Positions 2,187 to 21,290 of a DNA stretch of 64,000 nt are shown one piece after another. The stretch lies in the NCBI GenBank assembly GCA_964188305.1, contig OZ076892.1. One strand, written 5' to 3'. The translations under genes were made by a program, and so were the position numbers. The notes under the pieces were generated by a model that saw only the letters and a list, made by a program, of their open reading frames with translations, made no database searches and was not told the DNA's origin. Positions within the stretch are counted from its first letter, which is position 1; the number at the start of each line of letters is the position of its first letter. This DNA comes from Podarcis bocagei. Taxonomy: Eukaryota.

Positions 2187-3074
2187 CTTTTGGAGAAGGC
2201 TATCCCCATTTCCTCCTTCTGAGATGCCCCATAAATGGAACTGATTGTTGTGGGGCTTTTGCACACAGGACTTTTCCTTGTTGGGCTCAGGCCTGCTAAA
2301 TTATGCTCAAACTGATGTGAGCCTGCCTGGAAGGAGCTGCTGCTCTGCAGAGTCGAGCCCAGCTGTGAAGGGTTGGAAGATGTAGGACTGGGCTTCTGAA
2401 GTGGGCTTGGCCTAGGTGAACGGCGCCTCACGACAACTGACTGGAGAGGGCTCTTTAGTGCTGGGCTTCGCTCTTTTGGACTCAACTCTGTCACAGCAGA
2501 GGCCCTTGATGCTGAACCTGTGCCATAAGCACCCACTTCTTGCCAAGATTTCGATCCCTCTGAGGATTTGGCATCCTGTGCAGTTCCTCCTGAGAAGGGC
2601 TGTTCCTTGGTGTCATCCCCTTGGTTGTCTCCAGCACCCTGAGACCCCCGGGCATCCTTGGAAGAAGACTTCTTCTCCTTCAATGACCGACGTTTGGAGG
2701 ACTCGCCTCTGCTGTGATTAGAGGAGGATCGAGATGATGAAGACCTCCTTGACCTATCAGATGAGGACTTGTCAGAATTTCTTGAATGGCTTCTGGATCT
2801 TGGGGATGGAGATCTCCTCTTGGGTGACCGAGAACGTGAGCGTCCCCTACGAGGGCTATAGGCTTGGCGGTAGTTTTGCCAGTTGGACCTGTAATTTCCA
2901 TAGCCACCTCGGTTATATTGACCCCATGGGTAGAACCCTCTGTTCCTTCCACGGAAATAATAGGGTCTCCGATAACCTCTGTTATGCCCTCGGAAATCCC
3001 GGTTCTGGTAGACCCGCTGGTGGTTCCTCTCCCTGTTATGAGATGGAGAGTATGATCTCGAACGGGACCTAGAA
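2187..3074 (-). CDS. THRAP3: THRAP3 (TRAP150) large second coding exon, RS-rich
   Basis: Acceptor ttcctcAG|T at 3075-3076. Translates [91 protein letters not shown]...[29 protein letters not shown], typical of THRAP3. 888 nt, phase 2/2. Ends at probable GC donor AAAAG|GCAAGT. Confidence 0.93.
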
Positions 3075-6000
3075 CTGAGGAAAAAGAAAAATGTATTTGG
3101 AAATTGCTACACACAGTACTACAGCATTCTGATTGCAATACAAAGACATTAACCTGTTTTCATAATGATGCATAGGTTTTCCTTTAGCTCATCTCCAGCT
3201 TCTATCTCATAATGATAAGTATGCACTCCTTCCTTAAAAACAACCCTCAGCAATGCAGGGCAATGCAGATGGAACAAAGTTGCTATTGCTAGGATGAGCG
3301 TTTTCCTACAAAACCACTTCAGACACAGAGGAAGCAGCATTTTCTCCCTCAGAAGGCCATCCTCAGAGCACCCACCTTCCAGAGCTCAATTTGCAGCATG
3401 GGGCAAATGTACCCAATAGGGTAAAGAGGGAAACGTTATTTGTAACCTTTCAGTTTTATCTACTATAACCCACCAAGATTCCACTTGATGGATGATTTGT
3501 TTTTGTTTTTAAAAGGCAACATAAAGCTCTCTTCCCCCACACGTGACAGAAAAATTGAACAAGAAATGGAGTATCAGACATTATTCTGTCTTCCAATAAG
3601 GGAGTTAAATGGCCAGCAACTTTCTGCCATCAGGGCACACTACTCAAACAAACAGATCTTTTTTAGGTTCAAGTCTTTTGTGTTTGTGGATTTTTAAAGC
3701 AATATTATGTGACTGATTATATTTTTATATTTAATACACCACATTAAATAGACGTATCTAGTATGAGGGGCATGATGTGGAAGATACAATTTCAGGATTA
3801 AGTTCCCTTTGTTTGGGTTATAGTGTGTCAGACTAGGATCAGACAGATCCAGGTTTAAGTCCCCACTTAGCCATGAAGTTCAGAGAGTGATGTTGGCTAG
3901 GTCACTACTCTTGCAGTCTATTCACTTCATGTAACAACTGATACAAAGCTACTAATAAATCCCATTGGTGCTTACAAATGGGGTGCAGCTGCCCATGAAT
4001 GCTGGAGTGAGACCTGAAATAGCAAGTGCTTTGCAGGAAAAAGAAGGCCAGACGCTGCATCTCCCAACTGAAGGATTGAGGTGGGGAGATGACCGAGCAG
4101 GGAACAAAACTGCAACTGAAGCCCCGAAGAACCACAAACCAGAACAGCCCAAATGGATGACTAATCTGAGATTAGGCAAGGATTATGTAACAAGAAGTTG
4201 TGCTGGTGAGGAGCTACACAATCAAATGAAAACAGGTTTAAAAACAGAAAAGCAAGGTCTGCAGGAAAAGCAAGGTCTGGTACAATTTCTACACAAAGAG
4301 AAGTTGCTGTCTTGTTTCTTCCGTGAATCCAGCCTCTTTTACTATTAAGAAAAAAAACCAGAGCATCTTACCTTGGATTCTGTCTCATTCGCAAACAGTT
4401 TCAGCAACGTTAAGAAGGAATAGACATGCACACAGCCTGGTGCAGACAGTGAAAATGAGCTAATTATGAGGTGTTCCACAGCCCACGTAGGAGCCAGTCC
4501 CTAGACAGCTACTGCATTTTGTTATCAATTAACAGCTGAGGGACCTGTTGCCTGATCCTTCCAAAATCCATTTTGCCATTTTAAGAGGCATGGAAAATGA
4601 AAAGTTTCCCTTCAAAGATCTGTGGAGGCTGTTCATGAGAAATCATTTGAAAAGACACAGCACATGAAATGCAGCTGAGGTTGTGCAGCTGGGGGGCGGG
4701 GGGAGAACATGCAAGTTATTTCTCCCCAAAGCTTGCAGCTGAGTAACTGCATGGGTTCAAAGCCACTACAGAAAATAGAGCTACTGGGGTGGAATGACTC
4801 CTACAAAGAACTAAATAGATTATGACTAGAGCTGAGGCAGAGAAGGGGAATTCCCTGGAGAAAGACACAAATGTAATACAAGCCACATTCTCTGCAGTCG
4901 AGACACCAAACGCAACCAGCTGCCCAAGCTGCTTCCCTCTACCACAACATGATTCTGACCAGCAAGCCTATTATCCCTAAGAAATGAAGCCAACGTAAGG
5001 CAGGAAACCTACCTCAGTGAGTTTTCTATACTTTTCCTAGATTTGCATTCCCCAGCCTCTTCCATTTTACTTCTCCAGCCAAGTCATATGCATAATCAAA
5101 GTTTCTCCAAAAGCTGTCTGTAACCAGCGACATTTTGCATGCTGGGCTCATTCTCCATTGGCAGAGCTCCCCTCAATGAAGCCGGACATTCCCAGCCTAC
5201 TGGTAAGCCCTTCCTAATGCTTTTACCCTCTGTAAGGAGATCGTTTGTGCTTTGGCTCCTCTCCTCTTTCTGGCATTGTCCTTTTCTCCACCCCCTGTTG
5301 CATTTTACTGTTCCCTTTCTGTATCTTTCTCAGAAACCACACACACTAATTATTAACAGCCACTTATGCTTCTGTCCCAACAGTTACAGAAAATCTGCGA
5401 GCCTTTTACCATTATTTTTAAAAGGTAACAAAATAAATGGCTGATATAAACAAAATCTAACTAGAGACTCAAAATCTTCTGAAAAGTAAAGCAACACAAT
5501 GAACAGGCAAGTGGGCTTTGGTTCTGCAGGATGTGCCAATAAACAGATCCCAGAAATTATTCAGAATGTTGTTGTTCTTGTTAACAGTCCAGGTTTAAAT
5601 AACCAACTGGAAAAGCACAGAATTAGTACCCTTTCCTAACTTTCAATAGCGAAAATCTTCATCAATCTTTCTCTGCAATATAGCTCTCTGCTGCATCATT
5701 CTTAGATATATATCCTGAGCAGTGAGTTAAGATCAGTAACTTTTCATTAGAGACAAATTACAAATCTAATCACAAGGACATTTAAAGAGATAGAATAGAA
5801 ATCCAAATGTAAAATCTTGGGCAGACTTCACTATGATTGCTGAAGAACAGGTAAAGATACACCTCCTCTGTTCTGCTCCCTCTGCAATTTTAGGCATTTC
5901 TCAAAGTCAGAATAATTCCAGAGGCAACTGGCCAGTTGCTCAGAACGTTTGACAATAACCAACTTCAAAAACAACAACTCAAAAGGGCCTAGTACAACCA

Positions 6001-9643: not shown

Positions 9644-9789
9644 NNNNNNNNNNNNNNNNNNNNNNNNNNNNNNNNNNNNNNNNNNNNNNNNNNNNNNNNN
9701 NNNNNNNNNNNNNNNNNNNNNNNNNNNNNNNNNNNNNNNNNNNNNNNNNNNNNNNNNNNNNNNNNNNNNNNNNNNNNNNNNNNNNNNNN
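9644..9789. other. Assembly gap (146 N)
   Basis: Run of N. Confidence 1.
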
Positions 9790-16501: not shown

Positions 16502-16610
16502 AATAATAATAATAATAATAATAATTTATTATTTATACCCCGCCCATCTGGCTGGGTTTCCACAGCCACTCTGGGCGGCTTCCAAAAGAATATTAAAATA
16601 CTATGGTACA

Positions 16611-19600
16611 TCAAACATTAAAAGCTTCCCTAAACAGGGCTGCCTTCAGATGTCTTCTAAAAGTCTGGTAGTTGTTGTTCTCTTTGACATCTGGTGGGAG
16701 GGCATTCCACAGGGAGGGCGCCACTACCGAGAAGGCCCTCTGCCTGGTTCCCTGTAACTTGGCTTCTCGCAGTGAGGGAACCGCCAGAAGGCCCTCGGTG
16801 CTGGACCTCAGTGTCCGGGTAGAACGATGGAGGTGGAGACGCTCCTTCAGGTATACTAGACCGAGGCCGTTTAGGGCTTTAAAGGTCAGCACCAACACTT
16901 TGAATTGTGCTCGGAAACGTACTGGGAGCCAATGTAAGTCTTTCAAGACCGGTGTTATATGGTCTCGGCGGCCGCTCCCAGTCACCAGTCTGGCTGCTGC
17001 ATTCTGGATTAGTTGTAGTTTCCGGGTCACCTTCAAAGGTAGCCCCACGTAGAGCGCATTGCAGTAGTCCAAGCGGGAGATAACCAGAGCATGCACCACT
17101 CTGGCGAGGCAGTCCGCGGGCAGATAGGGTCTCAGCCTACGTACCAGATGGAGCTGATACACAGCTGCCCTGGACACGGATTTAACCTGTGCCTCCATGG
17201 ACAGCTGTGAGTCCAAAATGACTCCCAGGCTGCGCACCTGGTCCTTCAGGGGCACGGTTACCCCATTCAGGACCAGGGAATCCCCCACACCTGCCCGCCT
17301 CCTGTCCCCCAGAAACAGTACTTCTGTCTTGTCAGGATTCAATCTCAATCTGTTTGCCGCCATCCATCCTCCAACCGCCTCCAGACACTCACACAGGACT
17401 GTCACCGCCTTCACTGGTTCTGATTTGAAAGAAAGGTAGAGCTGGGTATCATCCGCATACTGATGAACACCCAGCCCAAACCCCCTGATGATCTCTCCCA
17501 GCGGCTGCATGTAGATGTTGAAAAGCATGGGGGAGAGGACAGAACCCTGAGGCACCCCACAAGTGAGAGCCCAGGGGTCTGAACACTCATCCCCCACCAC
17601 CACTTTCTGAACACGGCCCAGGAGGAAGGAGCGGAACCACTGTATGACAGTGCCCCCAGCTCCCAGCCCCTCAAGACGGTCCAGAAGGATGTTATGGTCG
17701 ATGGTATCAAACGCCGCTGAGAGATCCAGCAGAACTAGGAAGCAGCTCTCACCTTTGTCCCTAGCCCGCCGGAGATCATCAACCAGTGCGACCAAGGCAG
17801 TTTCAGTCCCGCGATGAGGCCTGAATCCCGATTGGAAGGGATCCAAATGGTCCGCTTCTTCCAGGCGTGCCTGGAGTTGTTCGGCAACCACTCGCTCAAT
17901 CACCTTGCCCAAGAATGGAAGATTTGAGACTGGGCGATAGTTGGCCATCGTGGCCGCATCTAAAGATGGTTTTTTAAGAAGCGGTTTAATAACCGCCTCT
18001 TTCAGCGGGTCTGGGAAGGCTCCCTCACGGAGGGAAGCATTCACCACCCCACGAAGCCCATCGCCCAGCCCTTCCCGGCTAGCTTTTATAAGCCAGGATG
18101 GGCAAGGATCAAGGAGACAGGTGGTTGGTTTCACTCGTCCAAGCAGCCTGTCCACATCCTCGGAGGTAACAGATTGGAATTGATCCCACGCAATTTGACT
18201 AGACAGGACTCTAGCACTCTCCCGCCCCGGCCCTGCTCCCACGGTGGCGTCTACCTCTTCCCGAATCTGAGCGACTTTATCTGCAAAAAACTTTGCAAAA
18301 TCATTGCAGGAGATCATGTGGCCCGTAATGGGCCCCGATGTAGCAGGTGGTTCCGCTAAATTGCGGACCACCTGAAAAAGTCTCCTGCTGCTGTTTTCTG
18401 CAGATGCAATAGAGGCGGCGAAGAAAGCCTTCTTCGCCGTCGCTACCGCCACTTGGTAGGCTCGACACTGAGCTCTAACCTGTGTCCGGTCAGCTTCAGA
18501 ATGGGTCATCCGCCACCGGCGCTCTAGCCGTCTCAACGATTGTTTCATTGCCCTCAGATCCGTGGAAAACCACGGGGCTGTCCGGGCTCCATGCAATCGG
18601 AGAGGGCGCTTCGGAGCCAAACAGTCAATAGCCCTGGTTAACTCCACATTCCAGCGGGCCACCAGGGAATCAGCTGAAAGGCCATCAACATGGGATAAAG
18701 CATCCCCTACCACTCTCTGGAAACCATTTGGATCCATTAAGTGGCGGGGGCGGACCATCCGAATCGGTCCCACCTCCCTGCAGAGGGGAAGGGTCGCGGA
18801 GAAGTCAAGTTGCACCAGGAAGTGGTCTGACCATGGCACTTCTTTTGTTTCGCTTTTACTTAGTGTCAGAACACCAACATCCATGGAGGTAAACACCAGG
18901 TCCAAGGCATGTCCGCGGCTATGGGTTGGGCCAAACTTATTCAGGGACAGCCCCATGGAGGCCATGCTTTCCACGAAGTCCCGAGCGGCCCCTTGTAAGG
19001 TCGTGTCGGCATGGATATTAAAATCCCCTAGGACAACCAAACTAGGTGTCTCCAGGAGAACATCCGCCACGACCTGAAGCAGCTCGGGCAGGGAATCCTT
19101 GGTGCAGCGGGGAGGTCGGTACACCAAAAGGAATCCTGTACTGCCCCTATTGCCCAACTTCCAGAACATGCACTCAGAAAACTGGGTCTTCCCAATAGGA
19201 CGCCTGGTGCAAACTAATGACTTCCTAAAAATCACTGCAACCCCCCCTCCCCGCCCACAAGGCCTGGGTTGCTGTGCGTAAGAGAAACCTGGTGGACAAG
19301 CAGCGGCAAGAACAGGCCCATCTGCTTCATCCAACCAAGTCTCTGTTACACAAGCCAGGTCAAATCCTTCATCCATGATCAAGTCATGGATGGCAGTGGT
19401 CTTACGAATCATTGACCTGGCATTGCACAGCAGCACCTTCAGGCTATGTGGGTATCCCTTGCTGATTCTAGTATCCGTCCGGACAGGACCAGACCCGGAG
19501 GCAGGGATAGTCCTCAGACAACGACTAAACCTGCCTCCTCTGTAATGACATGGTCTGGTCTTAGCGTAACTCCTCCTCCTACCCGTGATCACCGAGATCG

Positions 19601-19643
19601 GTTGTCCCAGCGCATCCCCCTCTGTGGAACATGCCCCAGCCAT
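16611..19643 (-). CDS. L2 LINE ORF2: APE endonuclease + reverse transcriptase (1010 aa from first ATG)
   Basis: APE motifs CNARS, VTETW, GDFN, SDH. RT motifs YRPVS, QSGFR, LDLSAAFD, GVPQGSVLSP, YADD. L2-type C-terminus HITPVLKDLHWLPV...FRRHLKAALFREAF. No stops or frameshifts. Confidence 0.95.
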   Translation of the reverse strand: MAGACSTEGDALGQPISVITGRRRSYAKTRPCHYRGGRFSRCLRTIPASGSGPVRTDTRISKGYPHSLKVLLCNARSMIRKTTAIHDLIMDEGFDLACVTETWLDEADGPVLAAACPPGFSYAQQPRPCGRGGGVAVIFRKSLVCTRRPIGKTQFSECMFWKLGNRGSTGFLLVYRPPRCTKDSLPELLQVVADVLLETPSLVVLGDFNIHADTTLQGAARDFVESMASMGLSLNKFGPTHSRGHALDLVFTSMDVGVLTLSKSETKEVPWSDHFLVQLDFSATLPLCREVGPIRMVRPRHLMDPNGFQRVVGDALSHVDGLSADSLVARWNVELTRAIDCLAPKRPLRLHGARTAPWFSTDLRAMKQSLRRLERRWRMTHSEADRTQVRAQCRAYQVAVATAKKAFFAASIASAENSSRRLFQVVRNLAEPPATSGPITGHMISCNDFAKFFADKVAQIREEVDATVGAGPGRESARVLSSQIAWDQFQSVTSEDVDRLLGRVKPTTCLLDPCPSWLIKASREGLGDGLRGVVNASLREGAFPDPLKEAVIKPLLKKPSLDAATMANYRPVSNLPFLGKVIERVVAEQLQARLEEADHLDPFQSGFRPHRGTETALVALVDDLRRARDKGESCFLVLLDLSAAFDTIDHNILLDRLEGLGAGGTVIQWFRSFLLGRVQKVVVGDECSDPWALTCGVPQGSVLSPMLFNIYMQPLGEIIRGFGLGVHQYADDTQLYLSFKSEPVKAVTVLCECLEAVGGWMAANRLRLNPDKTEVLFLGDRRRAGVGDSLVLNGVTVPLKDQVRSLGVILDSQLSMEAQVKSVSRAAVYQLHLVRRLRPYLPADCLARVVHALVISRLDYCNALYVGLPLKVTRKLQLIQNAAARLVTGSGRRDHITPVLKDLHWLPVRFRAQFKVLVLTFKALNGLGLVYLKERLHLHRSTRTLRSSTEGLLAVPSLREAKLQGTRQRAFSVVAPSLWNALPPDVKENNNYQTFRRHLKAALFREAFNV

Positions 19644-19944
19644 TTTGTTGGCTGGGACCCACTCCCCGGCAGCCCTGACCCTTCCCCTTAAGAACAAAAT
19701 AAGACCTTAAAACAATAAAAAACCCCAGAAAACAAAAAACAATACAGATGAAAAACTATAAAAATTACAAATCCATTAAAATCAAACAAATTCCCAACTA
19801 AACATCCATCCCACCCCCATCCCCGTCCCCGCAAATACAAAAAAATAAAAGAAAAAGGAAAAGGAACATTTTAAAACATTTTAAAAAGTACTCTGCGCCC
19901 CTCCGGATCCCCCTGGGCCGCAGCAGCAGTGACAGCAACCATCC

Positions 19945-20737
19945 CTGTGAGGCCTGTCAGGCCCTGCCCTGGGCCAGGTGGTGAGTGGCAGGAAGGAGCA
20001 GGGCCCTCAAACACTCACACAGGAGAGTCCTCCTGGGCAGCAGAGCACAGCAGTCCCTGTAAGTCCTTCAGGCCCTGCCCTGGGCCAGGTGGTGAGTGGC
20101 AGGAAGGAGCAGGGCCCTCAGACACCCACACAGGAGAGTCCTCCTGGGCAGCAGAGCACAGCAGTCCCTGTAAGTCCTTCAGGCCCTGCCCTGGGCCAGA
20201 TGGTGAGTGGCAGGAAGGAGCAGGGCCCTCAAACACTCACACAGGAGAGTCCTCCTGGGCAGCAGAGTGCAGCAGTCCCTGTGAGTCCTTCAGGCCCCGC
20301 CCTGGGCCAGATGGTGAGTGGCAGGAAGGAGCAGGAAGGAGCAGGGCCCTCAAACACTCACACAGGAGAGTCCTCCTGGGCAGCAGAGCGCAGCAGTCCC
20401 TGTGAGTCCTTCAGGCCCCGCCCTGGGCCAGATGGTGAGTGGCAGGAAGGAGCAGGAAGGAGCAGGGCCCTCAGACACCCACACAGGAGAGTCCTCCTGG
20501 GCAGCAGAACGCAGCAGTCCCTGTGAGTCCTTCAGGCCCTGCCCCAGGCCAGATGGTGAGTGGCAGGAAGGAGCAGGAAGGAGCAGGGCCCTCAGACACC
20601 CACACAGGAGAGTCCTCCTGGGCAGCAGAACGCAGCAGTCCTTATGAGGCCTCAGGCCCCGCCCTGGGCCAGATGGTGAATGGCAGGAAGAAGCAGGGCC
20701 CTCAGACACCCACACAGGAGAGTCCTCCTGGGCAGCA
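19945..20737. repeat. Minisatellite-like array, ~7 units (111, 111, 111, 121, 121, 120, partial)
   Basis: Unit anchor CAGGCCC at 19958, 20069, 20180, 20291, 20412, 20533 and 20653. Longer units carry a 10-bp GGAAGGAGCA duplication. Confidence 0.95.
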
Positions 20738-21290
20738 TTCCTCCATGTTAAACAATACTGTGAATGTTTTCATCTTTGTGCACACAAGAATCTCTTCACT
20801 CTGATGCATCCATAATTATTTTCATATTATGTATTCATTTGCACCTAGTTCGGTATCTTACAATCCAATTTCCTGTTGCATTTGCCATGATTTCCCATCC
20901 TTTAAAAAAATCCTTCCATTTAAGCTTCTTCCATTCTTTTTCCAAGAAATGAGTCTGTTGTATTTCTCAATGAATTCTAAATTCCTATTCAGAACAAGCC
21001 TCTTTTATTAAGGATAAGAAAAGGCGGAACATGTGGATTCGGTCAATTTTGTATGTGACTCAGCACACATATATTCAAATAACAACTCTGCTGTATTATA
21101 ATTTTCAATTTATGGGCCAGAGCAATTTCTTCTGCTTTGTGAAACCACTCTTTTTTAGTGTCCTTGCAGATGTTTACAAGGGACCAAATAGAAATCATTA
21201 ATATCATAATTTCAGTCTCTGAGCAGCTATATATAATCATTGATTTTATTTGTATGCTGCTTTTCCATGGTAAACTCTGCTCAAAGTAGT
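20738..21290 (-). mobile_element. Old L1-clade fragment (upstream half of the split L1; far boundary approximate)
   Basis: - strand ends ...TGTGCACAAAGATGAAAA...ATGGAGGAATG (degenerate AQR[W]K...MEEW), which continues naturally into TTATTGAAGTTATTGGAG at 16506-16489. Confidence 0.5.

Follow-up and report, generated by a model that had tools for sequence, protein, structure and literature searches.

Some long interspersed elements (LINEs) are preceded by stacks of short repeats, and the locus described here raises the question of whether such a stack belongs to a lizard LINE and could serve as its promoter. The element lies at 16502–20737, on the minus strand, of a 64,000-nucleotide stretch of Podarcis bocagei DNA (contig OZ076892.1 of assembly GCA_964188305.1; the whole stretch is hereafter the window). 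It is one complete LINE, running from a tandem array of short units through a T-rich unique spacer (the tether), an open reading frame (ORF) encoding endonuclease and reverse transcriptase (EN-RT) and a 3′ hairpin to an (ATT)8 tail. Array, tether and ORF form one retrotransposed unit, because the same junctions recur in a second copy at an unrelated, cleanly split L1 ORF1. We consider it somewhat probable that window 16502–20737 represents one recent insertion, by target-primed reverse transcription, of a single-ORF lacertid LINE of the L2 clade, and that the array units are its internal RNA polymerase II (Pol II) promoter.

The array is inserted together with the element

A copy from Podarcis muralis (OZ076956.1; hereafter L001) aligns to all 4236 nt of the window element at 96.5% identity, the array included. 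The L001 array has 10 units (L001 4897–6021) and the tether that follows measures 319 nt, versus 298 nt in the window; the flanks of L001 are unrelated to the window flanks. L001 splits an L1 ORF1: the L1 frame breaks off where the first unit begins and picks up again immediately behind the (ATT)n tail, and L1 ORF2 lies downstream of this. The original prediction for this locus held that array and ORF had been inserted as one unit, and it is the L001 insertion, not the flanks of the window copy, that bears this out. Three further copies (L002, L003 and L004) are 5′-truncated in the ordinary way, at element positions 1089, 2952 and 1182 respectively. The comparison comprises two full-length copies (window and L001) and three truncated ones; only four members of the protein cluster described below are placed at NCBI.

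For the window copy itself, deletion of 16502–20737 had been said to rejoin an old L1 frame, a claim that did not hold up. No L1 similarity is present in the window flanks, which gave no match to the almost complete Podarcis L1 taken from L001 by blastn, tblastx or tblastn and no match in Pfam. A repeat search with the flanks joined found no repeat spanning the junction, and a flank ORF compared with 1.84 billion representative proteins matched only translated tandem-repeat junk. At the junctions of the window copy, a 3-bp GAA duplication and the 2-bp CA microhomology are equally possible readings. The overlap between tail and target, also claimed for this copy, recurs in L001.

Array abundance in DNA contigs of a related organism tracks full-length L2 copies and argues against an independently amplified satellite. 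Word depth, which is to be read as an order of magnitude and not as a copy number, is 2400–4200 in the array bins versus ~4000 in the 5′-most ORF bin, and it reaches 1.2 million at the 3′ end, far above both array and 5′ ORF. The 3′ 500 nt of the element (window 16522–17000) are ~300 times commoner in these contigs than its 5′ end. This 3′ excess fits heavy 5′ truncation together, probably, with short interspersed elements (SINEs) that have taken over the L2 3′ end; such SINEs, of the Squam type and tailed with (ATT)n, have been reported (PMC7983390).

Two further features of L001 concern the state of its elements. L001 4638–4896 and 9448–12800 make up an almost complete L1 around the L2, with pieces of L1 ORF2 downstream in the same orientation. 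The L2 ORF of L001 has lost 5 bp and falls into three fragments.

A single-ORF element of L2 type

All features of the window element lie on the minus strand. Its 5′ tandem monomer array, of a type common to L001, spans 19942–20737 as delimited by Tandem Repeats Finder, repeat search and unit splitting. The tether between array and ORF (19644–19941; 298 nt) begins with a decayed unit end and then becomes T-rich, with 42% T on the element strand, in agreement with the ~300-bp T-rich spacer originally described. A single intact EN-RT ORF follows at 16611–19643; its ATG is at 19643, its last codon ends at 16614 and its stop occupies 16611–16613, and it encodes 1010 amino acids (aa). Pfam places an apurinic-type endonuclease domain at 18813–19421 (Exo_endo_phos, PF03372, E 1.5e-12; PF14529, E 4.7e-08) and a reverse transcriptase domain at 17217–17975 (RVT_1, PF00078, E 2.9e-37) together in this one intact ORF. 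The 85-nt 3′ untranslated region (UTR; 16526–16610) forms a stable stem-loop (−31.8 kcal/mol; z −3.75) that none of 200 shuffled sequences equals. The element ends in a perfect (ATT)8 microsatellite tail (16502–16525; Tandem Repeats Finder), which reads (AAT)8 on the plus strand and is of the same type as the L001 tail.

The single ORF and the lack of a recognisable ORF1, both claimed originally, stand. Every sense frame of each unit has one stop, leaving the array without sense coding, and upstream of the longer L001 array there is L1 sequence only, with no further piece of the L2 element. An Rfam search with the element returned no matching family, and blastn within the window found no second copy. 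Elsewhere in the window, a run of 146 N at 9644–9789 marks an assembly gap or masked sequence.

The window ORF shares 95% identity with a Podarcis muralis protein that stands for a 76-member cluster, in which several sequences are 1004–1010 aa long. The nearest further proteins are unnamed squamate reverse transcriptase proteins at 49–58% identity (Varanus and Anolis relatives at ~54%), followed by fish proteins at ~38–40%. The element has the traits of an L2: endonuclease then reverse transcriptase in one polyprotein, a 3′ stem-loop and microsatellite tail instead of poly(A), and no ORF1. We assign it to L2 on this structure and on a C-terminal motif that we take to be characteristic of L2. 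The intact window copy, an ORF identity of 98.6% between loci and the 76-protein P. muralis cluster suggest that the family is young and is, or was recently, active in wall lizards. The window copy is well bounded and probably still competent for retrotransposition.

Unit structure and turnover of the array

Tandem Repeats Finder describes the array as 6.9 copies of a period of 111–121 bp with 92% matches, and the repeat search gives the same register. Split at a fixed anchor, the array in element orientation resolves into units of 110, 121, 121, 121, 111 and 111 bp and a last unit that fades into unique sequence, with unit starts at 20729, 20619, 20498, 20377, 20256, 20145 and 20034. These seven units of 110–121 bp match the original count of about seven units of 111–121 bp. 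A further 8 nt of an additional unit stand at the extreme 5′ end of the element (20730–20737); whether the array is "truncated mid-monomer", as was claimed, hinges on where the unit boundary is set. The three 121-bp units have a 10-bp internal duplication in common, and this unit type occurs in the window copy only, not in L001.

Each unit contains one GC-box-like motif, GGGCGGGGCC (for example at 20414–20423), whose likeness to an Sp1 site is one of sequence resemblance only. A motif scan finds it intact at 20655–20664, 20414–20423 and 20293–20302 and altered to GGGCAGGGCC at 20535–20544, 20182–20191, 20071–20080 and 19960–19969. The end of the motif lies 36–37 nt before the next unit start, as set by the anchor. 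The array is 64% GC but CpG-depleted, with an observed/expected (o/e) CpG ratio of 0.07 in the window and 0.17 in L001 versus 0.52–0.55 in the ORF.

The alignments indicate that adjacent units are duplicated and lost, and that the array thereby diverges more quickly than the ORF: neighbouring blocks are most alike, the ORF is more conserved than the units and an odd unit is shared. Between the window and L001, identity is 98.6% in the ORF, 95.6% in the tether and ~91% on average for units compared between arrays. Within the window array, units are 97–98% identical in neighbour blocks (units 2–4 and units 5–6) and 83–90% otherwise, and the L001 units are 98% alike. Both arrays keep an odd 110-bp unit near the 5′ end, as unit 1 in the window and unit 2 in L001.

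In the 2 kb preceding the ORF, tandem units were absent from two Varanus copies, one Hemicordylus copy and one copy each of two further P. muralis L2 families; some of these copies may be truncated, and the two Varanus copies have only ~340 bp in common upstream of the ORF. This lacertid L2 family appears to have gained the array recently, and the foreign composition of the array fits the capture of outside sequence.

The tether may vary as well. One contig from run X15 (depth 206) joins window position 19711 to 19947 and skips the T-rich tether; it may represent a subfamily with a shorter or different tether. Splicing is ruled out as the cause of this joint, because the ends of the skipped part lack GT..AG on either strand.

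Open antisense frames also run through the array. Of the three antisense frames of the 111-bp unit, two contain no stop (window 19942–20737, plus strand; L001 4864–6000, minus strand), and in L001 a 378-aa antisense ORF spans the array. A search of the translated array against 5.8 billion proteins gave no match and no antisense homologue. We take the open frames as chance, because the 111-bp unit is a multiple of three and a homologue is lacking. A tandem array of another kind, at L008 885–3197 in P. muralis, has a period of 84 bp and 27.5 copies and translates to C2H2 zinc-finger linkers; it belongs to a KZNF-type gene and is not a LINE feature.

A candidate internal promoter

The structure shows that the element RNA begins inside the tandem array of ~111-bp units, and the array is therefore part of the transcribed element. 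The RNA runs on through the T-rich tether and the EN-RT ORF and ends in the 3′ hairpin and an (AUU)n tail that overlaps a T/A-rich target. In the mechanism that we propose, the units may act as the internal Pol II promoter of the element, with a GC-box-like motif in each unit and a predicted start ~29–37 nt downstream, near the unit junction. A series of units could act as a reserve when the 5′ end is truncated, a role that has been suggested for mouse L1.

The position of the 5′ ends is consistent with this mechanism. The two full-length copies start 8 nt (window) and 0–2 nt (L001) before the same unit anchor, and thus both begin within ~8 nt of the same unit phase, 29–37 nt downstream of the GC-box-like motif. 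Work on mouse L1 has taken the point where the first monomer begins as the transcription start of the parent element (PMC6454616).

Several observations weigh against promoter function. The agreement in phase rests on two full-length copies and has a probability of ~0.14 by chance (n = 2). Two stranded RNA runs from a related organism, tissue unspecified, cover the array at 0–7× in both directions with no pile-up of starts, and the ratio of RNA to DNA changes little from one end of the element to the other, a pattern that read-through of scattered copies would give. As the tissues of these runs are unspecified, the RNA neither supports nor refutes use of the promoter in the germ line. The units are CpG-poor to the degree given above and lack a TATA box, and 4 of the 7 window units have the GC box in the decayed form GGGCAGGGCC.

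We regard promoter activity and self-renewal of the units as putative but reasonable to infer. A more specific proposal is possible, although we lean slightly against it: each 111-bp unit would work on its own as a CpG-poor GC-box promoter with its start at the unit junction, and duplication of units between retrotransposition cycles would rebuild the array. Lacertid L2 families would then have evolved the rodent L1 solution to 5′ truncation independently, with few CpGs open to DNA methylation.

The same RNA runs also reveal a signal in the flank of the element. Window 20869–20949 is covered by stranded reads at 53× and 20×, with the first mate always on the plus strand. These reads carry two fixed differences (20923 A>C and 20924 G>A) and share a loose end at 20949 without splice-site dinucleotides. 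They look as if they came from a transcribed paralogue at another locus of the related organism and not from the window locus.

Alternative explanations for the array

The array could be part of the element and yet not be its promoter, an explanation that we consider unlikely but worth holding in view. It might be a by-product of template switching or slippage by the reverse transcriptase at the RNA 5′ end, or a repeated RNA element with a post-transcriptional role in structure, protein binding or translation, with transcription coming from the tether or from read-through. Such an origin would suit units that are CpG-poor and lack a TATA box, RNA reads that do not start in the units, and the fast change in unit number and type. 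It would also suit the long imperfect hairpin into which each unit can fold, but this hairpin is no better than those of shuffled sequences (z −1.62; 12 of 200 shuffles as good). Moreover, an element that needs a promoter within its own RNA offers no other obvious candidate upstream of the ORF, and the near-identical unit phase at which both full-length copies start, downstream of the GC-box-like motif, is more readily accommodated by a promoter in the units.

We regard it as improbable that the array is a host minisatellite or promoter fragment, gained by 5′ transduction in one recent master copy and therefore the mark of a sub-lineage rather than a designed feature of L2. The related L2 copies with no tandem units in the 2 kb preceding the ORF (two Varanus, one Hemicordylus and two other P. 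muralis families) are compatible with such a gain, as is a composition (64% GC, CpG o/e 0.07–0.17) sharply unlike that of the ORF. However, the array now travels with the element, as seen in copies that differ in unit number and type, and 5′ transduction is an account of origin only, compatible with promoter function. It would be very surprising if array and L2 were separate, with a satellite or other repeat standing beside a 5′-truncated L2 by chance or by nested insertion. The window flanks leave room for this, as they cannot prove a single insertion when the claimed L1 target is unrecognisable; against it, the array–tether–ORF junctions recur at an unrelated locus bounded by the split L1 ORF1, and array abundance tracks the 5′ end of the ORF. 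An internal promoter carried by the array remains the reading that we prefer.

Comparison with known LINEs

The parallel with rodent L1 drawn in the original prediction is apt at the level of layout, in which monomers are followed by a tether. In mouse L1 (A, Tf and Gf monomers plus tether) and rat L1, head-to-tail units of promoter size make up the extreme 5′ end, and a unique tether of ~250–300 bp separates them from the first ORF; the number of units varies between copies, adjacent units are most alike and 5′ ends fall inside a unit, all as in the lizard element (PMC5381506, PMC6454616). The lizard element differs in being an L2 with no ORF1 and with a microsatellite tail, not poly(A), so that at most it works like the rodent L1 family and is not a member of it. 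Its units are 111 bp long versus ~200 bp and are unrelated in sequence. They are also CpG-depleted, whereas L1 monomers form a CpG island, so that the resemblance to the L1 design is not a close one. For L1, promoter activity has been documented; for the lizard units it is predicted.

Comparable front ends have been described in CR1-group elements. A survey of CR1-group elements (PMC13343379; GBE 2026) reports lepidosaur L2 elements without ORF1, and the legend of its Fig. 4 notes, for some ORF1(−) CR1-group elements, species-specific repeat subunits close to the 5′ UTR, 1–5 in number and 100–500 bp in length; the survey includes no functional study of them. The lizard element resembles these in being a single-ORF element of the CR1 group (L2) with units of 110–121 bp directly 5′ of the tether. 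It differs in unit number, with 7 in the window and 10 in L001 versus the 1–5 subunits of the published arrays, and the published work contains no lacertid sequences, junction analysis or functional reading.

In fish, the L2 elements ZfL2-2 and UnaL2 demonstrate that one EN-RT ORF suffices for retrotransposition, which depends on the element's own 3′ UTR and tail (PMC3880073). The lizard element likewise has a 3′ hairpin and a short-repeat tail; it differs from the fish elements, for which we found no 5′ monomer array reported, and protein identity to fish relatives is ~38–40%. Lizard L1 elements of Anolis share the host group, and both they and the element described here must carry internal promoters. 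None of the lizard L1 5′ UTRs contains a tandem duplication (PMC5381506), and the monomer design in lizards is therefore found in L2 and not in L1.

Implications

Repeating 5′ subunits in ORF1-less LINEs of the CR1 group have already been noted in print (PMC13343379), which answers whether such front ends had been described; our finding is structural and overlaps with that published remark. The intact window copy and its near relatives are useful for studies of insertion polymorphism in Podarcis. If the units are promoters, this lacertid L2 would be a second, independent case of a LINE with stacked, redundant internal promoters. The idea that monomer arrays serve as insurance against 5′ truncation would then become testable outside rodents, in another LINE clade and in an element without ORF1.

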